A stretch of 64,000 bases of DNA, taken from the NCBI GenBank assembly GCA_964035545.1, contig OZ037768.1:2884741-2948740 (forward strand), written 5' to 3'. Below the pieces are notes generated by a model. It saw only the letters and a list, made by a program, of their open reading frames with translations. It ran no database searches and was not told the DNA's origin. Position 1 is the first letter of the stretch. The number at the start of each line of letters is the position of its first letter. Shown here one piece after another: positions 15,301 through 61,825 of this stretch. The position numbers were made by a program, and so were the translations under genes. Source of the stretch: Bugula neritina. Its lineage: Eukaryota; Animalia; Bryozoa.

Positions 15301-16933
15301 ACAAAGCTGGTGTTGATGTAGCTATAGTGTCAACAGAGTTGTCAAAAGGTAGCAGGTACTTCATAACAAGACTGGCAACTTGTAATAATATTTCCTAAGT
15401 TGGCAGCACAAGTCATCATAGTACAGAAGAGCTTAAAACGAACTCAATGGTTAGCGTAGTAATACTAGAATCTAAAATTATATTGATTAGGCTCTCGGTT
15501 ACATACTCTACTATATTTACTATGAGAATGTTTTACTCTATAATGACCCAATGTTTTCAACAAACATAGTGATATCCACTTCTAGAACACGTAATCTCTA
15601 TTCATAACGTTCTTATGGTAGCCTTAGATTCGCATATCACTTTCTCTCTTTCACATGGCATTCGTCTCCTTCTTCTTATTCAATGCATGTGTTCCTTCGC
15701 TCCATGTGTAATCTAGCACCTGTGTTTGAGTAACTTGCGTAACTCTTATGCTAACACAATCTTTAGAATATGTGTGGGCAATGCATATTAATAGACGGAG
15801 GAGATTAGTGCATGAGTATGTTTACTCAAGTCAAACTCTCAACTCATACTACTCTTATCGGCCATTTTTATCTTCAAATGTTTACATCCTCCTTCTGCTG
15901 AGTTGACCTTGACTTTAGTAGATGGTATCCCAGTAATAAGTTTATAAAAATATGTGGGACCCAAATCAACTAATGGCCTTTTACTATAAATATTTATTTT
16001 ATAAATCACGTTTGGAATTTGACTGTAAAAATTGTCAACAGACTTTTAAATATTTATTCCTTTGGGGTTGAAAACCTACTATCTTCATTTGCCTTTGTCA
16101 TTTGAGCTTGGCATTATGACACAACTTGGACTATGAATTAATAACTTGTCTAAACACGAGAGTAACCTTTAAGATGAAGAGAATGCATTGTGAGCGATAA
16201 TGTTGACCTCCATGTCTATTATGCTAATAATTTATTTGGATTATGTTACCTTTTCGATTGAATTGACACTAAATAGTTTTACATAATGTTATATCATTTT
16301 ACAGTGCAAAATCTATCCTCTGAAATAAAAGAGTCATCAGATGCCCAAGCGCGCTTGTCTTCTGCTACATCATCTACTATATCGCTAGGGAGAGATCAAG
16401 GCAATGAGGTCTCCAATGAATACGACTATTGTGATATAAACGACAAACCAACTGAAGTCTCCTCAAATATCAGTCCTTTACATCCTAATACTGATGATCG
16501 TATAGCCTTGGATTTACAACTCGATAGTCAGTATCTCTGCTACTATTTACAACACATATATAGCATCTGTAACAGAGTGAAGGAACACAAGCTTAATGTT
16601 GAAAAGACACTGGACAGCAAATCAGAGTTTAATAAACAAATGCTAGTTAGGCAAAGCAGGGAGCTGGTTGCTACAGCTCATGAGTTAGTGTACATAGGAG
16701 ATACGTTGTGTCGGTACATTCGGTCCTCTCATATCCAAGTGGCGGTCTCGAAGGCCGCTAACTCTTTGTGCAATGTTCTCAAAGAGTATATAATGAGTGT
16801 TAAAGACTTAGTCACAGCTACATCTAAGAAATCTCTAGCAGAGAGTTTGTTCAACTCTTTGTGCTCCCATGTTAAGGGAATACAACTTCAAACCCAGTCA
16901 TTTCATGATGTCGTTAACACCTACTGTCAGTAA
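6370..16933 (+). CDS. BCAR1: p130Cas/BCAR1-family (Cas) adaptor; exons 6370-6378 (tentative MSK start), 11632-11727, 12349-12495, 12845-14059, 14447-14624, 16305-16933
   Basis: N-terminal SH3 (LAKAKFDNFAESHDELAFRKGDVLTV..EGLEGWWLCSFRGRQGIVPANRV), YDxP substrate motifs, a helical serine-rich domain ending IHGNSSLLFK, a YDY motif, and a C-terminal FAT-like domain (AHELVYIGDTL). The first micro-exon is a guess. Confidence 0.9.
10455..10540. repeat. Short 13-bp tandem repeat (CAGTGAGTGGATA)
   Basis: About 6 degenerate copies. Confidence 0.7.
11730..11995. repeat. 21-bp minisatellite (CTAGTCTATACTCTATAGATA)
   Basis: About 12 copies starting immediately after the splice donor at 11728. Confidence 0.9.
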
Positions 16934-26804: not shown

Positions 26805-29800
26805 ATGACTTCTCGAAATCAAATACTGGCAGCTTTGAAGCCAGGAGCTGGCATGAAAGAAGATTTCAATATGTTTTTGCATCATTTTGTTGAAAAGAAG
26901 ACATTGAGGTTAGTATTTCAGTTGGTCAATATATTATTGTGTTGTTTCATGATTTCTATCTCATGCTTTATACTCTTAACATGTTTTGAGTAATCTTTTT
27001 TGTCATGATCTTTCCTAGATAAGTAACAATAGTGTCTCTATACCTAGTCAGTCATTTCCAGGAAACAGGATGTGAATAAAAATTTAATATTGTCTGATTG
27101 TTTAGAAAATGTTCCAATTTCTATAGCTTTTGAAAACCTTGATTAAAATTGTTATTTTTTAAAGGGGAGTAGGTTTTATCTTATAAACATGTGTTTGTAG
27201 ATATGAGGACTTTGCTGAACTGTGGAAAGAGTTACGGATGCCATATTTATTCGCCGGTAGAGTTGACGCGGAGCTCAGAGAGGTTAGTTCGGTTTGAAGT
27301 GTCGGAAAGCCGAGTCATTCAGCACTGAATCTTGCAGTCGAATGAATATAGTTATCAATCAGATGTATACAGTGTTGTGTCGGGTGTCTTCATTTGCTGA
27401 CGTGTTGTTACAGGGCGTTGTATTTGCCTGTTCGTGTGCTATTGCAATGTTCAATTCATCAAACAATATTCAGACCAAGATATGCGCTATCTACCTGCTC
27501 TACGCCACATACCAGACACAATGCCTGTATCCCAAAGCTAAGGTAAGCTCTTCATTTATACACAGTAATATCTGCACCTTGTGTGGATGGCAAAAACAGA
27601 GCTAACAGTAGTATACTTGAACCCAGCTTTATTTATACATGTAGAAAAACAATTCATCTCAGTAGCATGCAGTTGTTATAAATTTTTTTTATTTTGTTTC
27701 TGTAAAATAGTCAGCAATAAAAAATATTAAACTATGAATTGCCGTCATAAAACATTTCAAATGGACTCATGTTTTTTTAAAAGACGATGTAAATGTATTT
27801 AGTGGTTTCCATGTAGTCTGTATGATATGCTGTTTAAAGATCATATGTTGGTATTTATTTTCAGATTAGAGTTACTTCCCCTCAGTTTGTTGCTCTCTCG
27901 AACTTTGTTGATGAGATGGCTGCTGAGCAGCATTATGATTTCGTTTTTGTCTTTACGAGGCTTAGAATGGAAAGAGCATTTCTTTACGTTGCTACACCAA
28001 CTATTGTGAGTGCATGTCAAGACTCAAGATGCTATACTATTAGGTGTTGAAAATGTAACTCTGTGTATTCTTGTAAATGATAAGTGTTAGAAAAGTTTGG
28101 TATTGATTTGTCATTTCATTTAATGTACTATCTAAGTTCTATTATACCAATTGTCATTCACAAGAAGATAGTGTGATAGACAGTTTTTGTTCCATTTTAA
28201 ATATTTTGAATATTAAACTGTAATTGAGAAAAGAATTATTTTCTATGGAGTTGTCTTTCCATTCGAAGTATTGTAAATACTGAGTGTGTTTGTAAACTGA
28301 TAGCAAGGTAGGCTGAAGAAGAACCAGGCAGATGTGAGCAAAGTGAGAGATCTGCTGCCCACGAGTATTGTCACCACTTTCTCTGACCTGTCCTTGGACC
28401 TGATAGAGGTGACTCATCCCCATATTACCTGCTCTCTCTCAGTATCCTACCTGCTCTCTCTCTCTCAGTATCCTACCTGCTCTCTCTCAGTATATTACCT
28501 GCTCTCTCTCAGTATATAACCTGCTCTCTCTCAGTATATTACCTGCTCTCTCTCAGTATCCTACCTGCTCTCTCTCAGTATCCTACCTGCTCTCTCTCTC
28601 TCAGTATCCTACCTGCTCTCTCTCTCAGTATCCTACCTGCTCTCTCTCAGTATATTACCTGCTCTCTCTCTCAGTATATTACCTGCTCTCTCTCAATATA
28701 TTACCTGCTCTCTCTCAGTATATTACGTGCCCTCTCTCAGTATATCACCTGCTCTCCCTCAGTATATTACCTGCTCTCTCTATATTTTACCTGCTCTCTC
28801 TCTCTTAGTATATTACCTGCACAAAGTGTATCACCTCTTTCTCAGTTGACTGTTGAGAGATTTTCAAGTTATTTCCTTAACTCAAGTCTATATATTTGAA
28901 AGTATTTATGTATGATGGTTTATTAACATATTTTAGTAAAAGCCTTTTAGCTGTTCTCCCATAATGTAACTTCAATGTTTTCAGTAGAAAATTACTATTC
29001 CTTTGAGAAGTAACTAATTTTCCATTAGCTTAAATCACCTAAACTGGTCACCTAAACTCCAAGATCAGCATCATAAAGGATATAAACAAAAGACACAAGT
29101 TTTATCAGTTGATTTACTACCAACTCTCTTATTATTGACCCATTATAACACAACTGAGCTGTGTTCTAGGATCTGGCAGCTGTGAATGAAGAATACTATA
29201 GAGTAAAATGTGTAGCCACTAATCCTACCGAAACTTCTACATCTGAGGGTGTTGCTGTTCCCGCCACGTCACCTCATCCTTCAGTTGACTTGGCTAAGCC
29301 CGAGTTCATCAGAGATATCACCAGGTTAGAGCTGCAGGTTTACTTTGACGGGTTCTGTAGGTGTTACATGGGATACTGTAGGTGTTACATGGTATACTGC
29401 AGGTGTTACATGGTATACTGCAGGTGTTACATGGTATACTGTACGTGTTACATGGAATACTGCAGGTGTTACATGGTATACTGTGGGTGTTACATGGAAT
29501 ACTGTAGGTGTTACATGGTATACTGTGGGTGTTACATGGTATACTGTAGGTGTTACATGGAATACTGCAGGTGTTACATGGAATACTGTAGGTGTTACAT
29601 GGTATACTGCAGGTGTTACATGGGATACTGTACGTGTTACATGGAATACTGTAGGTGGTACATGGGATACTGTAGGTGTTTCATGGGATACTGCAGGTAC
29701 TACATGGGATACTGCAGGTGCTCCATGCTGCCATCTTTGTATCTTTGATGCTACAGGTTATGGAAAACAAGTATAGCTGATTGTAGATCTCTCAGTATTT

Positions 29801-31087
29801 TTTTATTTTAGACAACTTGCTCAGTTTGACAACTGGAGAAAAACTGGACAATTGAAGAAAAAGGTATTAGCAATCATGTTTTATATTGCAGTGTATGCTT
29901 TGTACATATTCAACACTTTCTAAATAATCAACAGTATGATACCTGATTAATATTGTACTAAGTAGAACTTTGAAGGTTTGAGAGAAAATCATAACTTGAA
30001 ATTTAAAGTTGATGCTAAGTTATGAATTAGCTACTTGTACAGTAATATTTCATTCAGTTATGAGTTTCATATGGTTTGAAATGTTACTACTCTATGTAAT
30101 ATATATAGTTAAATTTTATCACTGTTTGCTGTCACTGTTTGCTGTCACATGCAGGTGTCCAGACGGAGGACAAGTGTCAGCGGTGTTACCACGTCTGAGT
30201 CAGAGGGAGATAATCTGTCCGACTCAGATTCTGCGCCAGACGTGCAGGAAAATGTGGGTGAGAAGAGGCGAAAGATCCGAGACAGGGCCTTTGGTTTCGT
30301 GGCAAGCGACAGGCGATCCACCCGTTACCGCAAGATGGTTTCTGGGTCTATAAAGTCACCGGATGAGGCGGCTGCATCTGCCAGGTCAGTCTACTAGTCT
30401 TCTTTTTGGTAAATGCTTCTAGTTTGGAAAAACTTTTCATGTAAAAGTTGCAGAAGTTGTATTTGAAGCTCAACACAGCTATTGTACTGAAATGCATGTC
30501 TTAGCTGGCTGTTGTCTCCGCAGTTAAAGTTAGGGATTGCATCACACTATTTGTTGTCTATATTCTTCCTGCAAGTTGTTTGTCTGCAGATGGGGGTGCT
30601 AACAGTTGTCTCGACGCGTTCAATCAAATCTGTCGGATGGCCCCAGTTCTTATTCATCAACTTTTACTCAACTGCTCTGACTTGACTGTAATTCTTCCAT
30701 ACCTCTACCTCTATCCTTGGCACTAATTACATCACTCACTAGCATTACTTACTCACTCACATTATATGACTCACTAGCATTACTTACTCACTCACATTAT
30801 ATGACTCACTAGCATTACTTACTCACTCACAGTATATGACTCACTAGTAGTATAGTTATACATGTTGCAGTGCCCAATCTCCCCCCAAAGCCACCAGAAC
30901 TCAACGTAAACACAAACTCACTCTGCTAGAGATGGAAGATGTCACCAACACAAACACCTATCTACAAACAATAACTGCGCCGTCTAGAAAGGGCAAAGGT
31001 AAACGTCATCAGAAGGCCAAGGTCCAACAAGTGGCAACTTCTGCTGTTCCCATGACTCATGGCATGGAGAGTGGTAGTGATGGCTAG
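26805..31087 (+). CDS. SNAPC1: snRNA-activating protein complex subunit 1 (SNAP43); exons 26805-26908, 27201-27282, 27414-27542, 27865-28005, 28304-28408, 29170-29324, 29812-29863, 30155-30384, 30871-31087
   Basis: LRYEDFAELWKEL..LFAGR..AIYLLYATYQTQCLYPKAKIRVT..QHYDFVFVFTRLRMERAFLY matches the SNAPC1 conserved domain (RFEDFTELW, ALYLLYGLYNTQ, QKIRV, RLDRAFHF). The C-terminal exons are low-complexity but phase-consistent. Confidence 0.88.
28423..28820. repeat. ~21-25-bp minisatellite (TATTACCTGCTCTCTCTCAG)
   Basis: About 17 units starting ~15 bp after a SNAPC1 splice donor. Confidence 0.9.
29355..29720. repeat. 21-bp minisatellite (GGTGTTACATGGAATACTGTA)
   Basis: About 17 units in a SNAPC1 intron; source of the CRCYMVY and GVTWYTA ORFs. 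Confidence 0.92.
30735..30848. repeat. 34-bp tandem repeat x3 (ACTCACTAGCATTACTTACTCACTCACATTATATG-like)
   Basis: Three near-identical copies before the last SNAPC1 exon. Confidence 0.8.
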
Positions 31088-31748: not shown

Positions 31749-34700
31749 TTACTGGTAGGCAATGTTCCCATCATAGTTTCCATATGGGAGATCGTACATA
31801 CGGCCCCTACCGTACCCAGCATCCATGTACTGTACTTTAGAATATGGGCGTTGAGGAGCAAGGTATGGTGTAGCATAGCCATAGGCAGCGTGAGTCATGT
31901 CTACGTACTCCACACTGGCTGGAGCAATTGGTTGCTGACGGGATTCGTAAGTCAGCCATATTGCTAGTAATATCACCATCAGGGTCAGCACCAGCCCCCA
32001 CACTATCAGTACTATTACCCAATTCTCATTGAGCCAGGTTGTCTGTTCAATTGTGATATCTGTAACGTAACAATACCAAAGCTCAGAGAACCATGTGCGG
32101 CTTTATACTATTATGTGACAATTGTGAGTTCTGGATACAATGTACTTTTAGAGACTAAAGTTTCCTTCTGCCAGTGTGAACTTTCTTGGTCATTTAAATA
32201 ATTTAAATTCTATTTGTAAAGATTCATTACTAAAGTTCATGTGTCACACAAAGGTCAGCAATGAGTTCTGTTCACTGAAATGTACAAGTCTTGTACCATA
32301 GTACATAGTAGAAGTTCTGTATCATAGTATAGTACAAGGGCTAAGCCTACCTTCAGATCTCCTGTACTGTAGAGACATCGCTGCGGCGTTCTCTCCATCT
32401 GCCATGAGAATAGTAGTTGGTAAGCACTGAGGGCCTGAGGCTATGGTCACACAATTCTCGTCAGAGGTACAGCTACACTGTGAACTGTCTACAGCAGCAA
32501 TATGCTAATGGATATTTATAGCACAGACTATGATACAGCTGCAGTGTTTTACTATACAAACTTTTAGGTAGTTAATGAAGAGTATTGTCAATTTTTTCTT
32601 ATATATTTATAAGTTATATGTGTGGTTCAACTGTTGAAGTAGACAATTAAGTAGACAAGTAAAATTTTAAACAATTACCTGGAAAAAAGTTACAAAAATT
32701 GTGTTACTGTCCTCCATTTTTTCAGTCACATGTTTTATGGAGCATTGAAATATAGCATATTTATATAGACATTTTCATATCAATGTATAATCAGAGCAAT
32801 TTCAAATCAAGCTTTTTACAATATTAACTACAAAAATGACAAATAAATAACAACAGATTCTCCCCCTTTAAAATACTAAATATATAGTTATTGCTTAAAA
32901 AGCCATAATGTAAGCAACTAAGCATATATATAAAGAAAAGAAAGGTTATAATGAACAGAAGTTATAAGTGTTATACCTATCTGACAGGATCTGCCATCAT
33001 CAGCTAGAGAGTGGCCAGGTAGACACGTACATCTGTAGCTCCCCTCTGTGTTCTGGCAGCTGTGAGCACAGTTACTGGATATACACTCGTCTACGTCTGC
33101 ATGCAACCAAGATAATAGAACTTTGAAAGTATTAGTTTGTGTTGCTATTTGCAAAACAGGTTGTGCATTTGATCTAAACATAATTTTTTTTTAAATGTTC
33201 ACAAAGAATACATTTGTCTTTATTATTTTGTCCCACAAATCGGTTTATAAATAGAATAGAATAGAACTATTATAACCATGTTGTTCGTACGAATTATGCA
33301 TGCAATATATTTTTTTAAAATCATATTGCAAGTAGTTAATAAATGCTAAAAAGACATTTGTTATTTTATATAAAAAAAACCACATAATGGCTGAAAATTG
33401 ACAGTCAATGCTACGAGTATATATAAGTATATATAAGTATATATAAGCACATGATGGGATGTACCAAACTGATACTTTTGCTAGCATAGTTCTCTTCACT
33501 TATCAATGAGCTCTACTAACTCATTACATAATACACAGAACTGATACACACCAACACAGTTAGTACTCTGTCCATCTTCGATTCTGTAGCCAGGGTCACA
33601 TGTGCACACAGGTCCTGTGACTGTGTCTGTACAAGAGCTCGCCCCCGTACATCTAAATGATGGTCCACATTTCACTGCTGCACTAATCACATCTAAAATA
33701 TATATTTAGTAGTGACATGTAAAGCCAGAGTCAGCAGTAACGCAGAAACTTATGATATGTGAGCAAATTAATGTTTTTGGTGGTTCTATAACATTAGGTA
33801 AGTGTACACAAAGAATTCTAGTTATTTAATTTATTCTATATTTACCATCTAAACTCTCTCCTGGTGGGCCCCTTGGGCCTTGACTGCCAGCAGGGCCGCG
33901 TGAACCCCTGTCCCCTTTCTCTCCTTTATCACCGCGCACCCCCTTCTGACCAGAAGCTCCTTGGGGCCCTGGGCTACCTGTAGGGCCTGGCTCTCCAGTT
34001 TCTCCTCTTTCACCTGGTGTACCATCAGCTCCAGGCTCTCCTCTTTCTCCCCTGACACCACGGTCACCAGAAATACCTTGGTTGCCTTTCTGTCCAGTAG
34101 CTCCAGTTGCACCTAAATAATTTCTGGTGCAGATTTAGGATTGTTTTACAATATCACCATGATAATATACTACAATATTATTATATTGGGCTATATTGTA
34201 TTATATTGCATTATGTTATTCTATTGTTTTACGATACTACAGCATCTTATACTATAATATCATCATACTGTCTTATCATACTAGTGCTTTGATAGAAGAC
34301 AGGTTATATCGAGTTCACCTTCTACTCCGGGTACTCCGATGGTTCCATCAGCTCCCCCTCTGTTTACACCATCTATTCCTACATCTCCTTTACTACCCTT
34401 GAAGCCGGAGTTACCGGGAACACCAGTAGCCCCCACTACACCCTTCAATACACAAAACTATTTTTAGCAAAACAAATGTAAAACAACATTGTATAACTCC
34501 CACCCTTAATAATGAGTAATAAGTATTCGGCACTAGTACCAGAGTAAATGTTGCACATGAATGTCTACAAAATTTGCTGTGAAGAAGATATTTTGACAAA
34601 AAGTTGATGCGCCTATAACAAATTCTTTTAGTAGTTTTATCAGTAAATTTACAATAAGAACTCTTACCCTGTCCCCCTGGATCCCATTGTCTCCAGTGCT

Positions 34701-35369
34701 GCCAACGAAGCCCTTCTCTCCTGGATCTCCCTTCTCCCCAATGGAATATATTAACGTGGTGGGCCCCTCAACACCTGGTGAAATAGCATTATTCTGCAAT
34801 GTTCAAAGTCAATTCCTACTCCCATAAATATTGTATATAGTTAACATTTTTAATCAAATAAAGTTTATAAAAAGATACAATATTATAGAATTCAAATCAA
34901 TATCCATTTACTCAAGTAGTGAACTATATTAAGTGTCATTTATCTTTACTTTTAATACAATATTATTCTTTCTCAATGTAAACTTAGAAATCATATTAGA
35001 AGGTGCTTTTACACCACTTTTAGTTTTTATTAGTTACTCAAGATAATAAATAGCCTATGCTAAATCAATCATTTCTTATTAACAACCAAAGCAGTTGATA
35101 GATTAAATTATATGGCCTTTCATTCAAATAAGTTTATATTAACTGTTAACTCAAAGTTTACAAAACCAAGGTTTTAGAAATTTTCTATATTGTATGCACT
35201 ATATCATGCATGGTAGAGATGTGTGTATAAAACTGGCTAGAGTTAGACTATAGTTATGTTGGAATACTAATATTGTGTTATATTAATGACAACCTTTACC
35301 TTGTCCAGCTATCAGTGGCAGGCATGCTAAGAAAAATATGCAAGCACTTGCAATCACTTGACTCTTCAT
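31749..35369 (-). CDS. Type-I membrane collagen-EGF protein 1 (signal peptide, 50 Gly-X-Y triplets, 2 EGF plus a 4-Cys module, TM, Tyr-rich tail); exons 35369-35300, 34774-34668, 34442-34319, 34112-33846, 33692-33552, 33096-32977, 32488-32351, 32059-31749
   Basis: Signal [22 protein letters not shown]; Gly-X-Y exons; [19 protein letters not shown]; calcium-binding [28 protein letters not shown]; [25 protein letters not shown]. The exons splice into one open frame. Confidence 0.85.
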
Positions 35370-37141
35370 CTTGTCTCTCAATAGAAACTATGCCAAGCTT
35401 GTCATAGTGAAAGCACCTGCTAAGAAAGGCGTGGCACTGCTACTACTGACTTACTATACACACTGACTGGAGCATTTCATCAATAGAAATGCATAACAAT
35501 AGCATGTGGAATGTGGGCATAGAAGCGCACAAGCAATATAGAGGATTGCCACGGGTGAATGGCATACGTAAACTACTACTATTATATTATATGAATTTGA
35601 TGCCGGCTTGTACAGCTATATTCGTGTGCTTAAAATTAATTTAATATATTGGGTTGCCTATTAAATTTGATACCTAATTTTCAAGTTTAAAATGTTTCTA
35701 CTGTTTAATGTAATAAAATATATACACATGTACTAATTATAAGTTTTATATTTTCAACAATTCCTTACCTCAAACATAGAGAAAACTTTACTTCTGTAAC
35801 GCAGGGTTCGTTGCATTAAAGTCATAGAATATGTAGCTATTGTCAGATCAGAGAATACATGGCATTTTGTGTTTTTGCAGAGTAGATACTGTGCAATGAC
35901 ATAATATATTTACAGAGAATAATATATTATGCTGGTAATGACTATAGGAGAGTTAACAATTCGACTAGGCTAGGTGTGGTAAATAACTTACCAAGTAAAT
36001 GTAATCTGATATAGAGGTAGTAAATTATAATTTAGTCCCTAGAAAGTCAAAGTTCTTGGAAAATGTACTATTTTTGAGACAGTAAATAATTATGGATGTA
36101 TGAGGTCTTCTTTCCTTTTTATGTTTAACTATTACTTCTGTATTTCACAAGTTATACTTTTAAGATATTCCACCAGGTCGCTGAAATATGGCTCCGTCGA
36201 TGCTGAGGTTTGTCTGTCTCCTTGGGACTTTCAGTCAAATAATTGCTGTGACAGGTTGACGTAACTATAAATTATTAAACCTGCTCCGCCATGGTATGTA
36301 GACTACACTGTATCTACAAAATTCCAGAAAGAATATGGAATACATATTCTGAAAGCCATGGACTTGTTACTTGAGTACAGTTGAAAATGAAATAAACAAA
36401 TCTAAATGAGCTAGGCATCATGATGGTACATGGAAATTGCTTTAGACAAGAAATGCATTATTATACTATAATTTCTAGCTCTTTGAATAATGCAAATGTA
36501 ATATGCTTAGTATTATGGTATTATACAAGTAATTGTGGTATATAAGGATAATTCTACATACATGTTTCGTTCAAGTGTTGGAGTTTGTAATTTTAACCTC
36601 TTCTTACATAAACATTAATTGGTAAACAAACATGAATAAAACTGGCATGTATATATTTATTCAGTCATACTAACATATGGATGATATTTAATATTTATAT
36701 GCTTGATGAATTATACAGATTTGATATAACCTAATGTTTACTTCACTTATAAAACAACAACTAATACATATTATTATATATTATATTATTGTTGTTATAA
36801 AACATATTATACTTTAGACTATGGGTTATGATACAATTAGTGCTGGTATAGCTTATGGACCTTAAAGATCCTTATACAGTCAAAGCCAAGAAGTTCTCAT
36901 CAACAACTCCTTTCCTAGTGCATTGTTTAATCTGAAGCTGTGGGCCAACCAGCAACTTGCTTAGTTGATCAAAGCCAACAAGTTCTCATCAACAACTCCT
37001 TTCCTAGTGCATTGTTTAATCTGAAGCTGCGGGCCAACCAGCAACTTGCTTAGTTGATCAAAGCCAACAAGTTCATGTCAATGACTCCTTTCCTAGTGCA
37101 TTGTTTAATCTGAAGCTGTGGGCCAACCAGCAACTTGCTTA

Positions 37142-38967
37142 CACGGGCTTTCCATGTACCGATCTCAGATCGATCTCGCTAAGATCGATCTGAGAGATGT
37201 GCTCAGATCGATCGTTTTTCCATGAGAGTGTCAAGTTGCCTCCTCTTAGGGGCCATCCATAAATTATGTCACACTTTATTCAGCACTTTTTGACCCCCCC
37301 TCCCCCCCTTGTCACAAAGTGTCACGCTTATATGACCCCCTCCCCCCCATGTGATGTCACACAGATTATGTAAACGCCCTTTTAAGATTAAATACTACAT
37401 ACAAAAAGTACTGATTGAATGGTTTATGTTTAGTAATGATTACAGGCACAAAGTTCAATATTTATGAATGCAACTTTTTAAGAACCTAAATTTATTCAGT
37501 GTATCATTATTATCCAATGACAAGAAAATCATAAACATTATTGAAACCATGCTTGATTTAATAAGGCAGGTCATAAGTTCTGGCCTATAACTGCTATTTT
37601 TACTGCCTCAGTGGTATTAAAGTTCCACTAGACTCTAGAGCATGAAGTCTGTTTTTCAACATCATAATAGTTAGTTTTCTTCGATCCATGGTACTGTGGC
37701 CCATTCCTGGACTGACATGAACCACACTAATGGTTACATTATATAGGTCACAGGTGCAGAGGTCAAGGAGTGGGATTTTTGCTAATTGGTCTGGGGAGGG
37801 GGGGTCTGTTTTTATTGTGCTTTATATTGACAAAAAATACATGTATTTGATGTTTTATGTTCAGTATTAATACATATCTGAAATATTTTGTTTTGGTAAA
37901 ATATTTGAAAATGTGACATCACACATATCTACCCTCCCCCCTGTCACAAACTGTCACACATGAGGGTACCCCCTCCCCCCTTGAGCGTGACATAATTTAT
38001 GGATGGCCCCTTAAGTGAAGGATACTTTAAAAGTATACTTTGTTCACCTATTTGAGTGATTAAAGCTACTACTGTTGAAAACAAGATGGTCGTAGTCTAA
38101 AATTTAATCCCAGCTATAAACTATGTTATGTTTTTCAGATTTAGGGTTGATATGCTATCCAGAGAGTCTAATTACTTGCTATAGAACTGCACCAGGATAA
38201 GTCGAGTGAACGAGTATATATTTTACACACAATAATACATTATAAAAAACGATACAATACATCTGACAATTTACACATCTAATCTATTCAGCACTCTAAC
38301 TTCGACTGAGTTAGCAGCGGGAAACTACAATTGCTGCTAACTATCAAATACGCTAATTGGCTATCCATTGTTCCGGGTCAATTACGCGACCCTACATGTT
38401 GCGCTGCTGGTAGTTCCACGAACCACCACAACTATACGCAGCAAAGCTTTCAGTGTATGGTAATTTGGCCAATTTAAAGTAATTAATTTTAATTTTTGCG
38501 CTTGACAGCTTATATAAAATTAATGGCTGCCTTGCAGGTTATTAATAAACTTACAGGACTGTTGGGCTTAAAATTACAAAAAATAGCTAATGAAACTAAG
38601 TTTTAATAGTCATTTAAATTCAATTTAAATCCTCCCATTTTTTTACCTTCTACTGCATACAATTGAGTTTTCTTAATCATTGTACTTAAAAGTCAAAGTT
38701 TTGGCATCTGAAAAGGTGGCTATCATAATTATTCAATACTTTGCTTAGTAATTATTAATAAGTTATCATTTTTATTAGCAGACAACATTGTAGCGCGCAG
38801 TCTTTTTCTACTTCTCAGATCGATCTGGCGTCTTTCCATGGTCTTATTGACATGAGATCGATCTGAGTTCGAGCTCCACAGACCGACCAGCTCAGATCGA
38901 CGGAGATCGATCTTTTGCGTCTTTCCATGGATCGATCTCCCTGAGATCGGTCCATGGAAAGCCGGTG
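37142..38967. mobile_element. Non-autonomous DNA transposon, PIF/Harbinger-like
   Basis: 27-bp TIRs (CACGGGCTTTCCATGTACCGATCTCAG / CACCGGCTTTCCATGGACCGATCTCAG) and subterminal GATCGATC repeats. It is inserted at the TTA of a satellite unit (flanks TTA / TTT). No transposase ORF. Confidence 0.8.
37249..38010. mobile_element. Nested MITE with TTA target duplication (PIF/Harbinger-like)
   Basis: TIRs GGGGCCATCCATAAATTATGTCAC / GTGACATAATTTATGGATGGCCCC, with TTA on both sides. Confidence 0.85.
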
Positions 38968-39880
38968 TTTGTTGATCAAAGCCAACAAGTTCATGTCAAT
39001 GACTCCTGTATTTCCTTCAAAACTGAAAGCTGCGGGTTAACCAGCAACTTGCTTATTAGTTGATCAAAGCCAAGAAGTTCATGTCAATGACTCCTTTCTT
39101 AGTGCATTGTTTAATCTGAAGCTGTGGGCCAACCAGCAACTGGCTTAGTTGATCAAAGCCAACAAGTTCATGTCAATGACTCCTGTATTTCCTTCAAAAC
39201 TGAAAGCTGCGGGTTAACCAGCAACTTGCTTATTAGTTGATCAAAGCCAAGAAGTTCATGTCAATGACTCCTTTCTTAGTGCATTGTTTAATCTGAAGCT
39301 GTGGGCCAACCAGCAACTTGCTTAGTTGATCAAAGCCAACAAGTTCATGTCAATGACCCCTGTACTTTCTTCAAAACTGGAAGCTGCGGTTAACCAGCAA
39401 CTGGCTTAGTTGATCAAAGCCAACAAGTTCATGTCAATGACCCCTGTACTTTCTTCAAAACTGGAAGCTGCGGTTAACCAGCAACTGGCTTAGTTGATCA
39501 AAGCCAACAAGTTCATGTCAATGACTCCTGTATTTCCTTCAAAACTGAAAGCTGCGGGTTAACCAGCAACTTGCTTATTAGTTGATCAAAGCCAAGAAGT
39601 TCATGTCAATGACTCCTTTCTTAGTGCATTGTTTAATCTGAAGCTGTGGGCCAACCAGCAACTTGCTTAGTTGATCAAAGCCAACAAGTTCATGTCAATG
39701 ACCCCTGTACTTTCTTCAAAACTGGAAGCTGCGGTTAACCAGCAACTGGCTTAGTTGATCAAAGCCAACAAGTTCATGTCAATGACCCCTGTACTTTCTT
39801 CAAAACTGGAAGCTGCGGTTAACCAGCAACTGGCTTAGTTGATCAAAGCCAACAAGTTCTTATCAACAACTCCTTTCCTA

Positions 39881-40044
39881 CTCTGCGTTTCCATTATCGC
39901 ATTATGCGAATGGATTTTTTCATTCGGCTAATGGAAACAGTTACATGGGATGAAACCGCAACTATAAGGTAATGCAAACCACAAACCACAAATAATCCGT
40001 ACGAAGCATTCATTCGCATTATGCGCAGTCATGGAAACGCAGTG
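39881..40044. mobile_element. 164-bp MITE with CTA target duplication
   Basis: TIRs CTCTGCGTTTCCAT / ATGGAAACGCAGTG. Neighbouring satellite units show the empty site TTTC-CTA-GTGC. Confidence 0.85.
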
Positions 40045-41078
40045 CTAGTGCATTGTTTAATCTGAAGCTGTGGGCCAACCAGCAACTTGCTTAGCTGATC
40101 AAAGTCAACAAGTTCATGTCAATAACCCCTGTACTTTCTTCAAAACTGAAAACTGCGGTTAACCAGCAACTGGCTTAGTTGATCAAAGCCAAGAAGTTCT
40201 CATCAACAACTCCTTTCCTAGTGCATTGTTTAATCTGCATGAAGCTGTGGGCCAACCAGCAACTTCCTTGGTTGACCAATCGAATTAGAGTTATCACTAA
40301 AATCCTGGGAACCCAAAACTTCGACTATAAAAGGCAGCACAGAGGTAGCAATAGCTATTGACATAGAAATAATCATTAAATTAAACCATTATATTTTAAA
40401 CTGAGGAATTTTACAGTGAGTGACTTGGTCTATTTTTTCCTGTTTAGAGTGATGTATTAATTGTTGTAATTATGTTTGTAGTGGTGATCTATGAATGTTA
40501 CATTCATAGATCACCACTATAAACATAGACATAGTAATAGTCATAAGTGGTACATTTACAACAAATTGCCATGATGATAGTCATAGTAAGTTATAGTAAG
40601 TGCAAGCATTAGTCTTAGATTTAGTACTACTGCTGTCTATTACTAATAGTATTAGTATTACTTTTAATATTAAACCAATAATTAAAGTTATAGTATAACT
40701 ATAGGTATAAAATATATTGTCATTGAATTACATTTATTCTACTATTACTAATAGCTAATACTAATAACTAATAAGTAATAAAATAATACTAATTTGTTGT
40801 AGTTATTATATTATAATTATAAAATTGATAATAATAATACTAATGTAAATGTCATTATGAATATAAGTATATTTAGCTTCAGGGTTCAGGTTGTTCCCAT
40901 ACTAATGCATCAGTTTAGCTTTTTGCTAAAGAGCACTTATTTTACAAATAGTTAATACCATCAACATATAAATTTGTCTTCATGTTTTCATTAAATCAAA
41001 TGAGCTATTTTCCATCATGACAATATATTTGAAAAGACTTGTATACATTTACATGAGTATCTTTATCTTACAGGCAAC

Positions 41079-44000
41079 ATGTCTGCTGTGAAACACTTAG
41101 CAACTGTATTAATACTAAGTACAGTGGTACTGGCTCAAGTACCAATACCTACCAGACCGCTAGGTGTTGTGTATAAGAATGCGTCATCTTCTGCTGCTAT
41201 ACATATGGATGCGTATCTGGACCTTTCATGTGGAGACTCTAAAGCAGCTTTTCCCGTCCTGAAACAAGTAGCTGATAGTTACGGGAGCCAATTGCGACTC
41301 AAGTTTTTTAATTTCCCACTTCCATACCATCGAAATGCTCATTTATCTGCTGTTGTAAGTCTATTTGATAATTTGTGCTAGACTAAATACTTGAGACTAG
41401 GTTTTGAATATTATTTTTTTTAGATAATTTACAGGTGATCTATTTTATTTGTTGAAACTTTATTGTAGCAAAAGGCCATTTCATTTTCTCCATTAATTAT
41501 AGCAAAAAGGATGTTTGTAAGAAATAGTTTATGGCGTCTTATATAAATTATTTTTAATATTTTTACTAAACCGCTATGCCTATTCTTAGGTGTGTGGACA
41601 TTTGCAGAAGTTAATTTAACGGCACAGCCGTGGCCTAGCGGTTAGAACGTTTGCCCAGTAAACACGAGGTCATGGGTTCGAGCCCAGACAAAGGCCATTG
41701 GTGATGTTAGGAAGAGCATCCAGTCATTATTGCTCCTGTGCTTCATTTAAATAAGTCCTTAGCCGCTTTAACAAAAACCCTTTTTATCAGGGGTTTCCTT
41801 CAGGGATATCGACTATAAACTTGCAGTTTAATGAGATTTTTAACTTCTAGAATCATTGAGAGTAAAGAGTAATCAAAGGAGCATTTTATTAGCATTGACA
41901 GCTGTTGGCATTCTTATTGATTAAACTGCAATTTCACTTGCCATTTCTAAGTAACGAAGTTTTCTTTTACATCACACTGTTTTGTGCTTAGTTGTTGCCT
42001 TTTTCTAATGAGATGCCGAGCCAGAATTGAATTGACATGACATTTTGTGGGCAAAACCATTGAATGCACCACTTACAGTTTGTGCAGTAGAAGCCTAATT
42101 CAACCAAGAAACATGATTGCATCTACATGCTGTAGCTGATATCATTAAATACTTTTGGAAGATATGAGTTACAGATGAGTAAATGTGGTACCAACTTTTC
42201 TTTCTATTTACGACCCTGAGATTATTAATGAATTTAATGTAGTTGTCAGTTGATACGGAGGTTGATTTCACCTCTACAGATATGTTTTTTGGGGTTAACT
42301 TATTCAGACCTGTGAATCAGTAAAGTCAGGACATAGTATATATGTCTATATAATACAGATTATATTTTTACTAGTTTCTATTAATATCTAAAGAAAATTA
42401 ATTAAAAGAAACTTTTGGTGTAGAAAACTTGTGGTTTTTAAAATCTGTTGATCTAAAGCATGGGTGCTCAACCTTTTTTGGGAAAAGGCCGTAAAATAAC
42501 CCTGAGCCACCAAAAAGGCCACTAGAAAGTAGAAAGTTCAGTGTCAATCTTTCTGTCAAAACTCTCCATGTATTTTAATTGAAGCCTATTTTCTAATTTG
42601 ATATGTATTTATTGGTGTCCGGTAAAAATGGCACAGGTAAAAATGGCACAGGTAATAATGCCACAAGTGACAAAGTACGTAAAGATGGCACATTTTCAAT
42701 ATTAGGGTTTAGGATGGGGGTTGGGGGTTTGGGTTTGAGAACATCAGTGTGCCATTTTTACCTACTTTCCATTTGTGCCATTATTACCTGTGCCATTTTT
42801 ACCATGCCATTTTTACCATTTACCATTTTTATCTGTGACATATTTACTGGTGCCATTTTTACCTAAAATCATACTTATTTTATGAAAAAAGGATTCAGAA
42901 GAATAGCTTGATTTGTTCAGGAAAGTAAGCATTTCTCTGTACATTGAACAGAACACAGTATGGTTTGATAATTTGGTTCAATGTGAAGGATATCAGCCAA
43001 ATAGGAGTCTGTTAGCCTCAATTTGAATTTGTTTTTGGCATACCCCATTCGAGAGAATAACTGTTCACACCAATATGTGCTTGCAGTCATGATTAATATA
43101 GTAAACTTGGGAATTAGTAAAAAGCAAAATTGCGAAAGAATTGAACCTGAACTAAATTTTTATTTTACTAAGAGACAAAAAGGCCACATTTACCAGCTCA
43201 AAAGGCCGCCAAAAGTCTAAAGGCCGCAGGTTGAGCATCGCTGATCTAAAGTAAGATAGTCTACATCTTCAAGTTTACAGAATGCAAGAGAAACAAACTG
43301 GAGATCAACCAGAGTTCAATGCACATATCTACTTCCTTTTGAAAACCTCGCACTTAATTACGCAGATAGTTTGGCAACTGACAGTTTAACATTTTATATA
43401 TTAATTTTTAATGAATACATTATTGTGTATCGTATCATGTTATATGTGCAAAGGATACATGTAAATAGTGTAGAGTTTCTCTCCTCGTTGAACAGGGTTC
43501 TAAAATAGTGCATGACAATCCTATTCCTGGTCACAGTGCTGATGAGTCCGTTATTATGTGGGCACAAACCTTATTCGATACACAAGCCGAGTGGTCTGAT
43601 TTGGCAACTAAGGATGACAACTTGGGTCAAATTCAGGCGTAAGTGATTATCTTCAAGTAATCTCAATGATAGTTTAGTAGTCTAAGGGAAGTTATGTGAC
43701 ATGTGTTATCAGGTCATGTGATTGGAGGTGAAGGATACGAAATCATTATGTTGTGTGGCTCTGTCTGCTGCATCTACCTTTAGACTGCGTGTTACTATAG
43801 CTAACCCACTGAAGTATATAAATCTATTTGATTCTTTTTACTTTCGAGCAGCCATAGTCTAATCACTCTAATGGTTATAGTACTAGCCTAGCAAGCACTA
43901 GGTCACCGGTTCGAATCTCGGCTGAGCCATTGTTGATTCTAGAATGGTATTCAGTCTATAATTGCTCCTGTGCAAAACAAAACTATGTTGCTGGCATAGT

Positions 44001-45020
44001 ACTCAAAACTAAAGCAGCCCCTTTATTATCGGGGGAGGGGGGAGGGGGGAGGAGGGGGGAGGGGGGGAGGAGGGGGGAGGGGGCCCTTTCACAAAGGTAG
44101 AGACTCTAAACAGACATGAGCTTTGTTTGCTTTTATTCAATGTTATTATTCTCTCATATACCAGCCACCAGTACACTATGCATACTATATGCCTGCATAC
44201 CACTTCCTTCATTATAGTTTATAAGTGCTGGAGTTTTCCTCTCATTTTGTAGGCAGATTGCTTCCTACAGCTCAGCTCATGGTTACGATGTAAATGCGTT
44301 CCAACAGAACCTGACCAGCTCTGAGTATGATTCGGGAGCACGCATTGAATGGAAATATGGCTGTTCACGTTAGTGATTATACTTGTATATGTTTGTGTTT
44401 GTTGCCATGGTTACATATCAAGTATGAAATTATGCTAAAAAGTTTAATAGATGTTGTCTGCAGAAGAGTCTAAATAATGTATTTTATTAGAGGTATGGTT
44501 TTATATAAGATAGAAATCATGTTGAATAGTACAGTTGTGTAGCAAAGTGTTGGATAAATGTGGAATATTCTAAAATAAATCTAAAATATTGTAAAATTAG
44601 AATGGGTGTAGAATTTTATATAATAGATGTAGAATAGAATTAAAATGTTATAGGGTAGATATAAAACGCTTGCAGTGACATACTCAGGGTGATGTGTGTA
44701 TTATACTCTTTTTGTCCACCCATCTGCCAGGCTCTGTAGTGTTTTAAAGAGCAGTTACTAGTTGTGACCCAACAGTATTAAATGTTTCTCCAGTAACAGA
44801 GGGGTTTACTGTACTCATCACGGGCTATCAGGAAGTGACATATAGTATGTGAGGAAAAGGAGAGTTGTGTAATCAGCTGGATGCAATTAACTGATGTAAT
44901 TTCCTGTTTACAGGTGGAGTGGCCGGCACTCCCTGGATCTTCATAAATGGAGTAAACGTGGCTGCCGATGGCTCATGGAGCCTCTCCAAATATGAAGCTC
45001 TGATTGACTCCCTGCTATAG
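41079..45020 (+). CDS. Secreted DsbA-like / thioredoxin-fold protein, copy A (CGDS); exons 41079-41354, 43496-43638, 44253-44368, 44914-45020
   Basis: Signal peptide, DAYLDLSCGDS (CxxS), FPLPYH, and WKYGCSRGVAGTPWIFING (cis-Pro loop typical of the DsbA/Thioredoxin_4 family). Confidence 0.85.
41621..41825 (+). mobile_element. tRNA-derived SINE, family 1
   Basis: A box TGGCCTAGCGG and B box GGTTCGAGCCC. Homologous to 1779-1988 and absent from the paralogous intron of copy B. Confidence 0.88.
42459..43243. mobile_element. Non-autonomous hAT-type element with 8-bp TSD
   Basis: TIRs CATGGGTGCTCAACCT / AGGTTGAGCATCGCTG and TSD ATCTAAAG on both sides. The empty site is present in copy B at ~53500. 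Confidence 0.88.
42613..42870. mobile_element. Foldback-like element nested in the hAT element (GGTAAAAATGGCACA repeats, inverted at the other end)
   Basis: Tandem GGTAAAAATGGCACA on the left and TGTGCCATTTTTACC on the right. Exact ends and TSD are not resolved. Confidence 0.6.
43846..44100 (+). mobile_element. tRNA-derived SINE, family 2, with an expanded G-tract (44031-44083)
   Basis: B box GGTTCGAATCTC and a body shared with family 1 (ATAATTGCTCCTGTGC). The corresponding copy is in the other arm at ~52690-52900. Confidence 0.65.
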
Positions 45021-46180
45021 GTGGAAGAACTCTGTATTCCACTATATAGGAAGATATCTGTAGCCTCTAACCCTCAGGCCGGTAACTTAAGGCTGTCTCG
45101 AAATGCATTACATTAGTCCAAAATAATTGTAATTGACAAATTTTCATGTAATTGTAATTAATTACATACGTATGTAATTGACCCTAATCCTGACTCCTAG
45201 TATGATTTTAGTGTGATCAAATGGCAATTTCTTGCCTATTTCAGACATTTTTTGCTTTTTCAAAGTTAGTGATTATTCTTTTGTTAATGTCATATTCAAA
45301 ATTTTAATAAATGCAAGTCGAAACTCATTCATATAAGTTTCTGTTTATATAAAACTATCAATACTGGTTTTGAATAGCAGAGTGTATCTCACTCGGAGTT
45401 GTCTTGCCAGTTCAACATTTGAAATAGACTACTACATCAAATAATGGACATGCATGTCTAGTGTATACTATATCATAAAATATATACCTAATTCACAGAT
45501 TTAATTAAATTTAAATAACAAAGTATTTATTATAGCTGTTGAAAAAGCTCCAACTTATACATAACTTATTGTCAGCTATATAGTATGTACTGTAAACTGG
45601 TACTATTACAGCATCTATACCTTATGCATAAAGCTTTTTTATTTAACCAGCAGCTCTGTTTATTAGTGCACATAAAAAGACAGCCTTGCACATCTGAGAA
45701 TGATGGATGAAGTTTCAATATTTATTATAATACTAACATATATTTCAGCAGCCTCTACATTAGTTTCATATTATATTCATAGCCAGTATTAGTTTCGTGT
45801 GGTTGTAAAACAAATCAAAAATATAAATTCACTCATGCATGTGTTTATAAAAATAAAATGATATAATATTTCTCTAATAAATCTACTCTATGCCAATAAT
45901 TAAACAGCAATTACTATTTACAGCTAATCAGAGTAAAATGCTTAATATGGCAGCTTTTAAAAACGTGTTTCTAACAACTGAAGTTATAGCCAAAAAGTAA
46001 ACCTTCGTGTTTTATGCTGGGTTAATACTAAATGTTTACTGGCTAACTGCATTCTAGCAGGTTTAACACCAGACTTGGTTAGAGTGTTAATAGTGTCTGT
46101 AATACTACCTAGTGTCTTGTATACATTTTATATATTCAGGGAAACTCTTGTGCTATATAGGTGTCAAAACTGTATCATAT

Positions 46181-46440
46181 AGATGTCAGACAGGTGTCAG
46201 ATAGATGTCAGACAGGTGTCAGATAGATGTCAGACAGGTGTCAGATAGATGTCAGACAGGTGTCAGATAGATGTCAGGCAGGTATCAGATAGATGTCACA
46301 TAGGTGTCAGATAGGTGTCAGGCAGGTGTTAGATGGATGTCAGATAGGTGTCAGATAGATGTCATATAGGTGTCATTTGTGTCAAAAGGTGTTATTTAGA
46401 TGTCATCTAAGTGTCATCTAGGCATCATCTAGGTGTCAAA
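46181..46440. repeat. 22-bp minisatellite (AGATGTCAGACAGGTGTCAGAT), decaying into the stop codon of collagen-EGF gene 2
   Basis: Direct reading. Confidence 0.88.
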
Positions 46441-49400
46441 TATGCAGTGCTGACTGTCTTCCTCGTTGAGTTCTCAACAGCTGGAGCCAGACAACAGAAT
46501 GCTATCACCAGAATCACCACAACAACCATTAATAGTAGAAACCAAATCAGCAGCGCTAGGAGAGCGTTCTCATTCAGTAAGCTGGTGCCAATCAGCTTTG
46601 CTACAAAATAAACAGTATGTTAGATACAAACTTTATATTAAACAGAGGTGAAAGTTTTTTCAGCTTTCATCAGTAATAATTTCAAAAAAGTGATCATGCT
46701 TTTAGTTGCTTTAGTTGCAAAGACTTTTTAAAGAGTCTACAATTTAGGCTATTTGTAGAAAGTTAAAAAGTATCAAAAGTTGTAGCTTAACTTTAAGGTT
46801 GACTTTTTTAATATTTTTTTTTCTCAAAGCTAATGAAGTAGCTTTATAGTGTCTTTTGTAATATTTTTGTGTAAACAAAAATGTACTTTAGTAGACCTAT
46901 GCCATTAGTAAGAACATTTATGTTTTCATACCATTAGCTGCAGTTTTATTGTCTTGAAAGCATTTGTATGAGCCGAGAGTGTTGAGACATATCTGGTCAG
47001 ATGCACATTTATCTTTTCCTTCCAAGCATTCATCTATGTCTAGAATTGTCACACCATAATCATGATAATGATTATACACTATACCTGTATAGCTCAGAGT
47101 GATATACCTACGTGCCCTTCAACTCTTTGGCAGAGCATACAGTTTACACAAGCTGAATTTTTGCTATGGCCTTACAATTAATACTGTCACTAAAATAAAA
47201 TTGTTACTTATTCAAGCAAAGCGCTTATATTATTTTTGAAATGGCTGAATCAGAAGTTACATTTCTAGGTCTACACAGTATACTACAATGAGCTCTAGCT
47301 TTACACAGAATGCTATTCTACAGTAAAGTTTGTAGAAGAACCGTATGTAAATAGTAAACCCAAGAATTGAATGCTAAATTGTTTATATAAAGTATGAGAC
47401 CAACTGACCGACACAGTAGCCTGAGGCCCTAGCCCGGTAGCCACTGTAACAGCTGCACTCCCCACTGCTACAGATTTGATGGCATCCTCCATTATCTATG
47501 GAACACGTTCTTGCTGGGAATAAGTCACCTGAAAAATTAATTTTAAACACAGTCATGGATTGAAAGAGCAAAACTTAATGATGTTGTGTTAATTACTATG
47601 AGTTAAGTTGAACTATTATAGTGATAAAAACTAAATACTAGAGCTTATAGCTAAGAAATTACTACTTTTTATACCTCAATACAATGTTTTTCTGTAAATA
47701 AACTACAACATTAAAATATACAAATATATTTATTTGATATAATATATTGAATAACAAAAAATTATCTCAAACAAGCTTCATATTTTTTTAATTTGATAAA
47801 AAGTGTTTGAAACCAGTGCTTTTAAATCCCTATCCTTCCTATCCACAGTTTTAACTTGCAGTTTAAATTACTTTTGCACATGTTGATATGAATTTAAAAT
47901 GACATTTAATATCATAATTATACTTCTTCACATAACATTTACACTCACTTCTGCATGTGCCATCTGGTCTGAGACTGTAACCATCTAAACACTTGCAATC
48001 ACCAACGACGTTTCCGGAAGAGTCTAAGTTATCCTGGCAGTATTGTGACCGGCACGATTTACCGGAATACCCCTCCAATTCCAGGCAGCCATCTTTGTAC
48101 TTGCTGTCTGCAAGTCATTAATTAATGTCATGTATACATATGACACGTGATGAGAGTGCATGCAGGTGCCAATTTGTTATGCAACCACACATCAAAATAA
48201 AAAACAACAAAACAACTAACATCAATACCATATATACATATTATGTAAGTAACGGTGTATATAACATAGTATCTTTTGACAACATTAAGTATATATATAC
48301 ACACGAGGATACACTGGTGAGCTATATTATAATAGCTAACTATAGATATAATGATATAAAGCAATATACCAGCTGCAATGATAATGAGAGGTTTTTATGT
48401 TATTTTTACCATAAAAATAAAATGTATTGTCCTATCAGTGTGCACAGTTACTTTATTCTTAGCTACAACTGAAATTGTGCCCCCTTACCATAGGGGAATG
48501 GATAGCCTAGGAGTCCTTGATAACCATGAGAGCCAGGTGCACCTATATCTCCAGCTTCTCCTGGATTACCAGCGGCACCCCTCAAACCAGAATTCCCTTT
48601 AATTCCTGTTTGACCTGGACTTCCTTTAGGTCCAGGAAATCCCTGAGCTCCAGTAGCTCCTTGACTGCCCTTAGCACCTGCAGCTCCAGTTACTCCATCT
48701 AAACCCTCCACTCCTTTGATGCCTTCAGATTTCAAATCATTAAAACATTTAACCATATTGTATATAAAAATAGACTAAAAATTTTTGTTTGAAGTTTTCA
48801 ATGACAAACATTATTTTTGTAAAGATTACATCATCCATTAGGGTGCATTATCCATTCAGGTGCATTATCTATTACTAATTATTATTTGTACCTACAACAC
48901 GTATGAAATTTAACACAGCAAATACAAAACAGACAAATTTGTTTAACAACTTTATTGATCTTTAGAGCTGTATGAATGCAGTATTATAAATAATATTACG
49001 TTTGAATACTGATATAAAGACATCACAACATCTGCCCACCTTTTTCTCCTTGAGCACCAGGTGTACCAATATCTCCAATGACACCCCTCACTCCAGTAGC
49101 ACCGGTTGCACCGCCTGTGTTAGCTAAATGAGCTCCTTTAGCTCCTGGTGCACCTTTCTGTCCTGTTGGACCAGTTGCACCAGTAGCACCTTGTAAGCCC
49201 TGTTATATAAAGTTATAGCTCAGTGCTAACAATGATGTCCTGTGTTGATTACAAACTAATGTTCTATATATCTAAAAGTCAACATAGTAGAGGGTACATA
49301 TGAACATATCTATCTGTAACATTTTGTGTTCTATGCATAAAAAGGTGTTTTCTATGTTTAGAAAAGCATGCATTATATTTAGAAAGATACATTCTATATT

Positions 49401-49597
49401 TATAAAAGTATAATTTATATTTAAAACAACCCTCTTACTTTACTTCCTGTAGCTCCTCGATCACCAGTAAATCCTTGACTTCCGGGTAATCCGACTTCTC
49501 CTTTTTGACCTGAAAACTGAGGCGGTGCTGTTGGTTGGCCAATTACAGCAGCCACACAGACTAACAGACATACTGCTAGATAACGTCTGACATTCAT
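46425..49597 (-). CDS. Type-I membrane collagen-EGF protein 2 (signal peptide, 49 Gly-X-Y triplets, 2 EGF-like plus a 4-Cys cbEGF half, TM, short tail); exons 49597-49439, 49199-49040, 48722-48489, 48107-47949, 47528-47409, 47039-46932, 46600-46425
   Basis: Signal MNVRRYLAVCLLVCVAAVIG; Gly-X-Y exons; CSIDNGGCHQIC..CSCYSGY; DIDECLEGKDKC..CLNTLGSYKC; TM ALLALLIWFLLLMVVVVILVIAF; tail CCLAPAVENSTRKTVSTAYLTPR*. Confidence 0.85.
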
Positions 49598-54700: not shown

Positions 54701-54873
54701 AAAGCTGCTTTAGAGTCTGGACAGGCAAGGTCCAGATACGCATCCATATGTATAGCAGCAGAAGATGATGCATTCTTATACACAACACCTAGCGGTCTGG
54801 TAGGTATTGGCACCTGGGCCAGTACGACTGTACTTAGTATTAATACAGTTGCTAAGTGTTGCACAGCAGACAT
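51755..54873 (-). CDS. Secreted DsbA-like / thioredoxin-fold protein, copy B (CPDS); exons 54873-54598, 53248-53106, 52548-52433, 51888-51755
   Basis: Same four-exon structure as copy A; DAYLDLACPDS, FPLPYH, WKYGCSHGVAGAPWFFING. Confidence 0.85.
52690..52900 (-). mobile_element. tRNA-derived SINE, family 2 (duplicated with the arm)
   Basis: Minus strand reads GGTTCAAATCTT..GGCCATTGGTAATGCTAGGAAGGGCATCCGGTCATAATTG. Confidence 0.65.
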
Positions 54874-61717: not shown

Positions 61718-61825
61718 GACAGCTCCAAGGCAGACCAACACAGTCCACAACAACAAACAACTAAAAGCTAAACAATCACCACTCCAGTGGCAAAGTAGGG
61801 TGCGAGTACGATCTAGCTGCCACCA

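Follow-up and report, generated by a model that had tools for sequence, protein, structure and literature searches.

Do two neighbouring genes of the bryozoan Bugula neritina, each encoding a predicted membrane protein with a collagen helix of the same length, provide the chains of one mixed helix at the cell surface? The question arises from a window of 64,000 nucleotides (the whole stretch of DNA that was analysed), C4:2884741-2948740 of a genome of 216 Mb, in which the initial annotation had read the two products as chains of a single heterotrimeric receptor. Our results indicate that both genes are conserved and that the geometry of their helices has been held while the sequence was replaced. 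A mixed helix appears to us the more probable explanation, and the evidence for it and for its rivals is considered below.

Structure and conservation of the two genes

Both genes were rebuilt from the minus strand and the spliced models were joined in local scripts, while single exons or database protein identifiers served as the database queries. In both models all introns are GT-AG and the frames are closed (Table 1). The order of signal peptide, collagen, two EGF modules, four-Cys module and transmembrane (TM) helix, which had been read from the window before, was recovered in each gene with the agreement of Pfam and hydropathy. Pfam matched Collagen on both collagen exons scanned. The EGF exons matched EGF-type families, with only exon 6 of each gene above the curated cut-off, no family was found for the four-Cys exon of gene 1, and no family other than Collagen and EGF was found in either gene. 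After the collagen, each chain carries 16 Cys (6+6+4). The signal peptides were called from hydropathy and from a conserved Gln after a small residue; the Gln stands at the same position in the Watersipora orthologue of gene 1. The C-terminal 19-residue windows have a mean hydropathy of 3.1 in gene 1 and 3.5 in gene 2. AlphaFold modelled the region after the collagen with low confidence (mean pLDDT 50).

Table 1. Positions of the features in the window, counted from its first letter (cbEGF, calcium-binding EGF)
Feature	Position	Strand	Remarks
Gene 1 (chain A)	31749..35369	(-)	8 coding exons, 425 aa; signal peptide, 13-aa head, collagen 17+2+33, EGF, cbEGF, 4-Cys module, linker, TM, 66-aa tail
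Gene 1 exons 1-4	35369-35300, 34774-34668, 34442-34319, 34112-33846	(-)	
Gene 1 exons 5-8	33692-33552, 33096-32977, 32488-32351, 32059-31749	(-)	
Gene 1 exon 1, predicted signal peptide	35300..35369	(-)	cleavage likely before Gln, by eye
Gene 1 collagen, aa 36-187	33853..34739	(-)	exons 2-4, triplets 8 / 9+2+4 / 29
Gene 1 helix interruption RG	34356..34361	(-)	RE, II, IS in relatives
Gene 1 exons 5-7	32351..33692	(-)	EGF, cbEGF, 4-Cys module and linker
Gene 1 TM helix	31950..32018	(-)	limits approximate
Gene 1 cytoplasmic tail	31752..31949	(-)	66 aa, 12 Tyr
Gene 2 (chain B)	46425..49597	(-)	7 coding exons, 371 aa; signal peptide, 9-aa head, collagen 16+5+33, two EGF-type modules, 4-Cys truncated cbEGF, TM, Cys pair, 21-aa tail
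Gene 2 exons 1-4	49597-49439, 49199-49040, 48722-48489, 48107-47949	(-)	
Gene 2 exons 5-7	47528-47409, 47039-46932, 46600-46425	(-)	
Gene 2 collagen, aa 30-181	48499..49510	(-)	exons 1-3, triplets 8 / 8+5+8 / 25
Gene 2 helix interruption LANTG	49113..49127	(-)	APSA, AGGS (1 residue shorter) in two distant lineages
Gene 2 exons 4-6	46932..48107	(-)	6-Cys EGF-like module, EGF, 4-Cys truncated cbEGF
Gene 2 TM helix	46494..46562	(-)	limits approximate
Inverted duplicate of DSBA-like neighbour	40491..45790	(+)	between the collagen genes; derived; outside the protein pair

In a second B. neritina assembly with an independent annotation (GCA_010799875.2), the span of gene 2 and its 371 aa are identical. 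The database protein KAF6018761.1 (B. neritina, 410 aa) has all junctions but one in common with gene 1 and is five triplets short. The source of the difference is two 1-base gaps in gene 1 exon 3 of GCA_010799875.2 (locus positions 10896-11017), and placing N at both gaps restored 17+2+33. It suggests that the shortfall is probably an assembly error. The DNA of that locus is about 85–90% identical to ours and keeps every splice site, and against the sister assembly gene 1 has a dN/dS of 0.26 and gene 2 one of 0.22. Four assemblies retain the splice sites and their phases, while the Logan contigs of the locus keep the introns and represent DNA only. The model of gene 1 exon 3 uses the acceptor at 34442, and a second acceptor in the same frame lies 45 nt downstream. 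An assembly artefact or a pseudogene was ruled out by the intact frames, the purifying selection and the conservation of the orthologues. Taken together, the data show two conserved genes under purifying selection, both with a predicted type-I layout.

An exhaustive search with the four-Cys/TM/tail part of gene 1 gave 8 matches among 1.84 billion proteins. One is Watersipora subatra XP_067932468.1 and the rest come from sequencing runs and metagenomes as fragments of the last exon; none of the 8 matches to this juxtamembrane query carries a brachiopod name. Word searches gave no match for the TM exon of gene 2 and only EGF-level matches for the EGF-TM region of gene 1. Orthologues of both genes stand in tandem in W. 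subatra (378 aa for gene 2) and in a third, more distant lineage, which is probably bryozoan. The pair is known only from bryozoans or bryozoan-like samples.

The membrane end is well conserved. In the TM helix of gene 1, W, L, T, L, W and the next E are invariant across 8 homologues, LALL-W is invariant in the orthologues of gene 2, and the TM profiles of the two genes match each other (E 6e-6). This conservation would suit a helix-packing surface. The tail of gene 1 carries a membrane-proximal Tyr motif, YVDM, for which relatives have YENI, YETM, YETL and YEKI, and a Tyr-x-x-hydrophobic motif was seen about 12–16 residues past the TM helix in 5 of 8 relatives. Most relatives are Tyr-rich, while the tail is otherwise unconserved and cannot be aligned in detail. 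Gene 2 encodes a Cys pair and ends in a short tail, of which one Tyr is invariant. It is the Tyr-bearing tail of gene 1 on which the label of a receptor would rest. Two smaller readings of the initial annotation changed at this end of the proteins: LNEN, rejected as a family motif, is unconserved in the gene 2 orthologues, and the spacers from collagen to membrane are similar as stated, but their lengths of about 148 and 144 are corrected to 156 and 152 from the collagen end to the conserved TM Trp.

Geometry of the collagen helices

The counts given earlier for the two helices, 17 triplets, RG and 33 triplets in gene 1 and 16 triplets, LANTG and 33 triplets in gene 2, are exact in Bugula; each collagen has 152 residues, of which 53 precede the last block. 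The reported divergence was also observed, as only 18 of the 102 X/Y residues are identical between the genes. The same is true of the shifted intron: the first collagen intron is common to both genes, and the second is offset by 4 triplets (8|13|29 vs 8|16|25) with totals that still match. Within each gene the collagen introns are fixed, and the exon split of the gene 1 collagen is the same in Watersipora and the third lineage.

All three lineages have 17+2+33 in gene 1, with RG or RE, II and IS as the breaks. In gene 2 the count is 16+5+33 for Bugula and 16+4+33 (151 residues; APSA and AGGS) for Watersipora and the third lineage. The block of 33 triplets and the position of the kink are thus constant in all six chains of the three deep lineages, and the helix lengths of the partners are matched within one residue. 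Free variation of helix length among the orthologues was looked for and did not appear, with X/Y positions saturated. The register of 53+99 residues proposed at the outset is kept in its 33-triplet block and its kink, but outside Bugula the tie is off by one residue. Since gene 2 has 151 residues there, the exact 152/152 tie is specific to Bugula, and "exactly 152 in both" was rejected as an invariant.

The sequence carried by this geometry has turned over. Between any two deep chains the X/Y identity is 8–20%, about the off-register background; identity in register does not exceed the off-register level and lends co-assembly no support. The post-collagen regions of orthologues are 36–47% identical with 2–5 gaps, and the EGF modules and tails of gene 1 and gene 2 are 19–27% identical. 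Conservation was seen in a few residues at each helix end and in the short N-terminal heads. The helices are poor in Pro (6–13 per 152 collagen residues) and have 6–14 Thr at Y.

As a control for the rate of indels, four tandem secreted short collagens of the same genome (C1:2.23-2.25 Mb) were compared. Their main exons have 30, 22, 30 and 15 triplets, and copies with 84–89% X/Y identity differ by 8 triplets, which indicates that triplet indels are common in this genome, with the caveat that young tandem arrays are prone to unequal crossing-over and overstate the usual rate. The secreted short collagens form an expanded family that ends in a GAVYTRWG-type head and gains and loses triplets fast.

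The stasis of the helix geometry in the pair, as read from the orthologues, points to selection on geometry. By itself it cannot separate a mixed helix from two equal homotrimers, and because gene 1 and gene 2 are paralogues, the common register can be inherited. The pair is a clean natural case in which the geometry of a helix is conserved and its sequence is not.

One mixed helix or two homotrimers

We consider it rather probable that these old tandem paralogues encode a kinked heterotrimer of about 44 nm, folded from the membrane end, with a Tyr-bearing tail on chain 1 (the product of gene 1). A 2:1 ratio of chain 1 to chain 2 would be the most likely stoichiometry. The heterotrimer of the initial annotation is favoured by the geometry kept in the orthologues, while paralogy allows an inherited register and the charge pairs are only suggestive.

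It has been reported that chain register can be set by axial Lys-to-acid pairs (PMC7824840). Charge pairs were counted for all eight registers in each of the three lineages, with shuffled triplets and cross-species pairings for comparison. A z of at least 1.5 in all three lineages, whatever the scoring, was reached by ABA alone. On the axial edge from chain 1 to chain 2, the combined z was 2.4–2.5 for cognate (same-species) pairs against 0.2–0.4 for cross-species pairs, and among 17 slides the best was that at zero offset; the signal is marginal, as six mixed edges were tested and the reverse edge from chain 2 to chain 1 was flat. The raw scores were highest for homotrimers (AAA in Bugula, BBB in Watersipora). 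The charge-pair result may weakly favour a mixed helix.

The alternative that deserves most weight, possible but considerably less probable in our estimate, is that the genes form two separate homotrimers, whose geometry predates the duplication and is kept by each gene for its own reason, either a fixed distance that must be spanned or the damage that a heterozygous indel does to a trimer. Homotrimeric collagens too resist indels. The paralogy on which this explanation draws is clear from the common first collagen intron and the matching TM profiles, in two lineages the homotrimers reach equal or higher charge scores, and the EGF modules and tails differ strongly. On the other hand, the same numbers of triplets would have to persist in two independent genes during a complete replacement of the X/Y residues on six branches, while long members of the family differ in block lengths and other short collagens drift fast.

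It is improbable that the products are matched partners outside one helix, that is, two homotrimers bundled via their N-terminal arms or binding across a cell contact, with equal height and kink under selection. The single kink, roughly a third of the way from the N end, is reminiscent of C1q, in which the N-terminal halves are bundled (PMC5902488), and the short heads are conserved, but the heads have no Cys for C1q-like cross-links and residue-level equality is not obviously required by lateral packing. The shedding known from type II membrane collagens (PMC7848082) hints that the membrane form could be a folding intermediate of a short matrix or cuticle collagen, yet this, like mis-spliced models, is very unlikely, since no RxxR or dibasic site is conserved in the ectodomain, the part between the EGFs and the TM helix included, the Tyr-bearing tail is retained and the four assemblies agree in splice sites and phases.

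For the mixed helix, which we favour, the following assembly may be proposed. After removal of the signal peptide, the chains would be gathered in the ER by their TM helices and the adjoining four-Cys/linker region, which would take the role of a C-propeptide. The helix would then zip outward from the membrane end, the direction of ordinary collagens and the reverse of that in type II membrane collagens, and give a rod of about 29 nm, a hinge and a tip arm of about 15 nm on an EGF stalk, if a rise of 2.9 A per residue is used (PMC10404678). A gain or loss of a triplet in one gene alone would put the partner out of register, and we propose that for this reason neither gene can drift. The stability of the Pro-poor helix may lean on pairs of Lys/Arg with acids and possibly on glycosylated Thr at Y. 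Glycosylated Thr stabilizes the cuticle collagen of Riftia (PMC11766948), and by analogy its presence at Y in this pair is our guess. The binding target of the tip would be matrix, cuticle or an adjacent cell, and a connection to signalling or endocytic adaptors may be made by the Tyr motif of chain 1.

A stronger form of this proposal is tentative and, in our view, rather doubtful. The pair would be an obligate heterotrimeric type-I collagen receptor, in which the TM helices and the truncated EGF select the chains and set their register, the collagen is the ligand-binding tip and the signal passes via the Tyr motif of chain 1. If it is true, the pair would combine, in one membrane collagen, an inverted topology, a mixed composition and a direct capacity to signal. 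It would then also be the short and tractable representative of a lophophorate family that has yet to be described.

Relation to known collagens and to the surrounding genome

The MACITs (XIII, XVII, XXIII, XXV and COL-99), ectodysplasin A, the colmedins and the class A scavenger receptors are all type II, with a cytoplasmic N-terminus (PMC7848082). The pair resembles these proteins in its single TM helix and its extracellular, interrupted Gly-X-Y helix, and differs in carrying a signal peptide and in its order, in which the collagen occupies the N end, the TM helix the C-terminus and the EGFs the part between. The N-proximal TM helix that defines type II is missing, as the ATG opens a short hydrophobic leader and a strong TM helix lies near the C end in all orthologues. 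Unlike the MACITs, the pair has no conserved juxtamembrane furin site. Reviewed membrane collagens trimerise near the N-terminal anchor (PMC7848082), and a tail-anchored design implies another choice of chains and another start of the helix, by TM helices or the truncated EGF and not by a propeptide. Because the proteins are small (371–433 aa) and easy to express, the question of chain choice is testable.

Luo et al. described abundant collagen and EGF proteins of Lingula as shell matrix collagens, some of them tandem-duplicated (PMC4595640), and neither "transmembrane" nor an anchor was found for these EGF-collagens in the main text of that paper. Compared by that description only, they are like the pair in combining collagen with EGF/cbEGF, in having no COLFI and in coming from a fellow lophophorate. 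The nearest Atlas cluster is CCBE1, with a score of 0.80–0.81 that is a lead only; it has collagen and cbEGF in 300–430 aa. CCBE1 is secreted, with EGF first, collagen last and no TM helix, whereas the order in the pair is collagen, EGF and TM.

CD93, thrombomodulin and endosialin gave the top EGF-only matches and are also type I with a cbEGF stalk, but they have a C-type lectin tip and no collagen, and the likeness is limited to the EGF modules. C1q A/B/C and the collectin CL-LK invite one and the same kind of comparison. The pair shares with C1q A/B/C, and also with collagen IV, the clustered paralogues, the short kinked helix and the matched chain lengths (PMC5902488, PMC10404678). It differs from C1q and collectins in having no gC1q, lectin, fibrinogen or NC1 head and no N-terminal Cys, in its membrane anchor and in a heterotrimer that is inferred here. 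If the mixed helix holds, the pair would work like C1q in the matching of chains without being a C1q member.

No description of a type-I membrane collagen was found in the literature searched, which left subscription journals mostly outside. The Pfam, word, exhaustive, Atlas and literature searches agree with the earlier proposal of a type-I topology outside any described family, and the pair is a membrane collagen with inverted topology that is undescribed in that literature. The architecture, which the same proposal did not recognise, extends beyond the pair. The collagen-EGF-TM layout occurs at other loci of the genome and is therefore a family trait; what is new is the locked geometry of the pair, a short member of a wider, undescribed family with relatives of 1,000–3,000 residues. 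Two long relatives at C1:30.19 Mb and C1:30.23 Mb form a convergent pair with the same collagen-cbEGF-4Cys-TM ending. Their last blocks are common (29 triplets, a 3-residue break and 42 triplets) and they differ further up, so that another matched pair is possible. A cbEGF with a four-Cys truncated cbEGF is also present at C1:7624180-7627281, where there is also a gene-2-like TM exon, and at C2:11715289-11718378. A third close paralogue of gene 1 or gene 2 was not found in the genome.

The order DSBA, gene 2, gene 1 and SNAPC1 (on the opposite strand) is the same in four assemblies. The linkage of gene 1 and gene 2 is part of this wider conserved block, which is interrupted in the present genome. 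The separation of about 11 kb noted initially is real here but derived, as the distance is about 0.6–1.3 kb in the other three assemblies, and the inverted DSBA-like duplicate inserted between the genes accounts for much of the gap. The secreted DSBA/Thioredoxin_4-like genes at 41079-45020 (+) and 51770-54873 (-) belong to an inverted duplication of about 5 kb that flanks gene 2 and is 78–92% identical. By synteny the upstream copy is ancestral; its Cys motif is CPDS, against CGDS in the derived copy, and both copies look open in the exons read. Satellite arrays also lie between the collagen genes (36880-37141 and 38971-39874), with 84/89-bp repeats, a 177-bp higher-order unit and other repeat inserts. 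The further neighbours are a CAS-family adaptor gene (12824-16933), a LINE-type reverse transcriptase (22866-25335), SNAPC1 (26835-30390, convergent with gene 1) and an LTR-retrotransposon pol frame with RT, RNase H and integrase (57803-61756).
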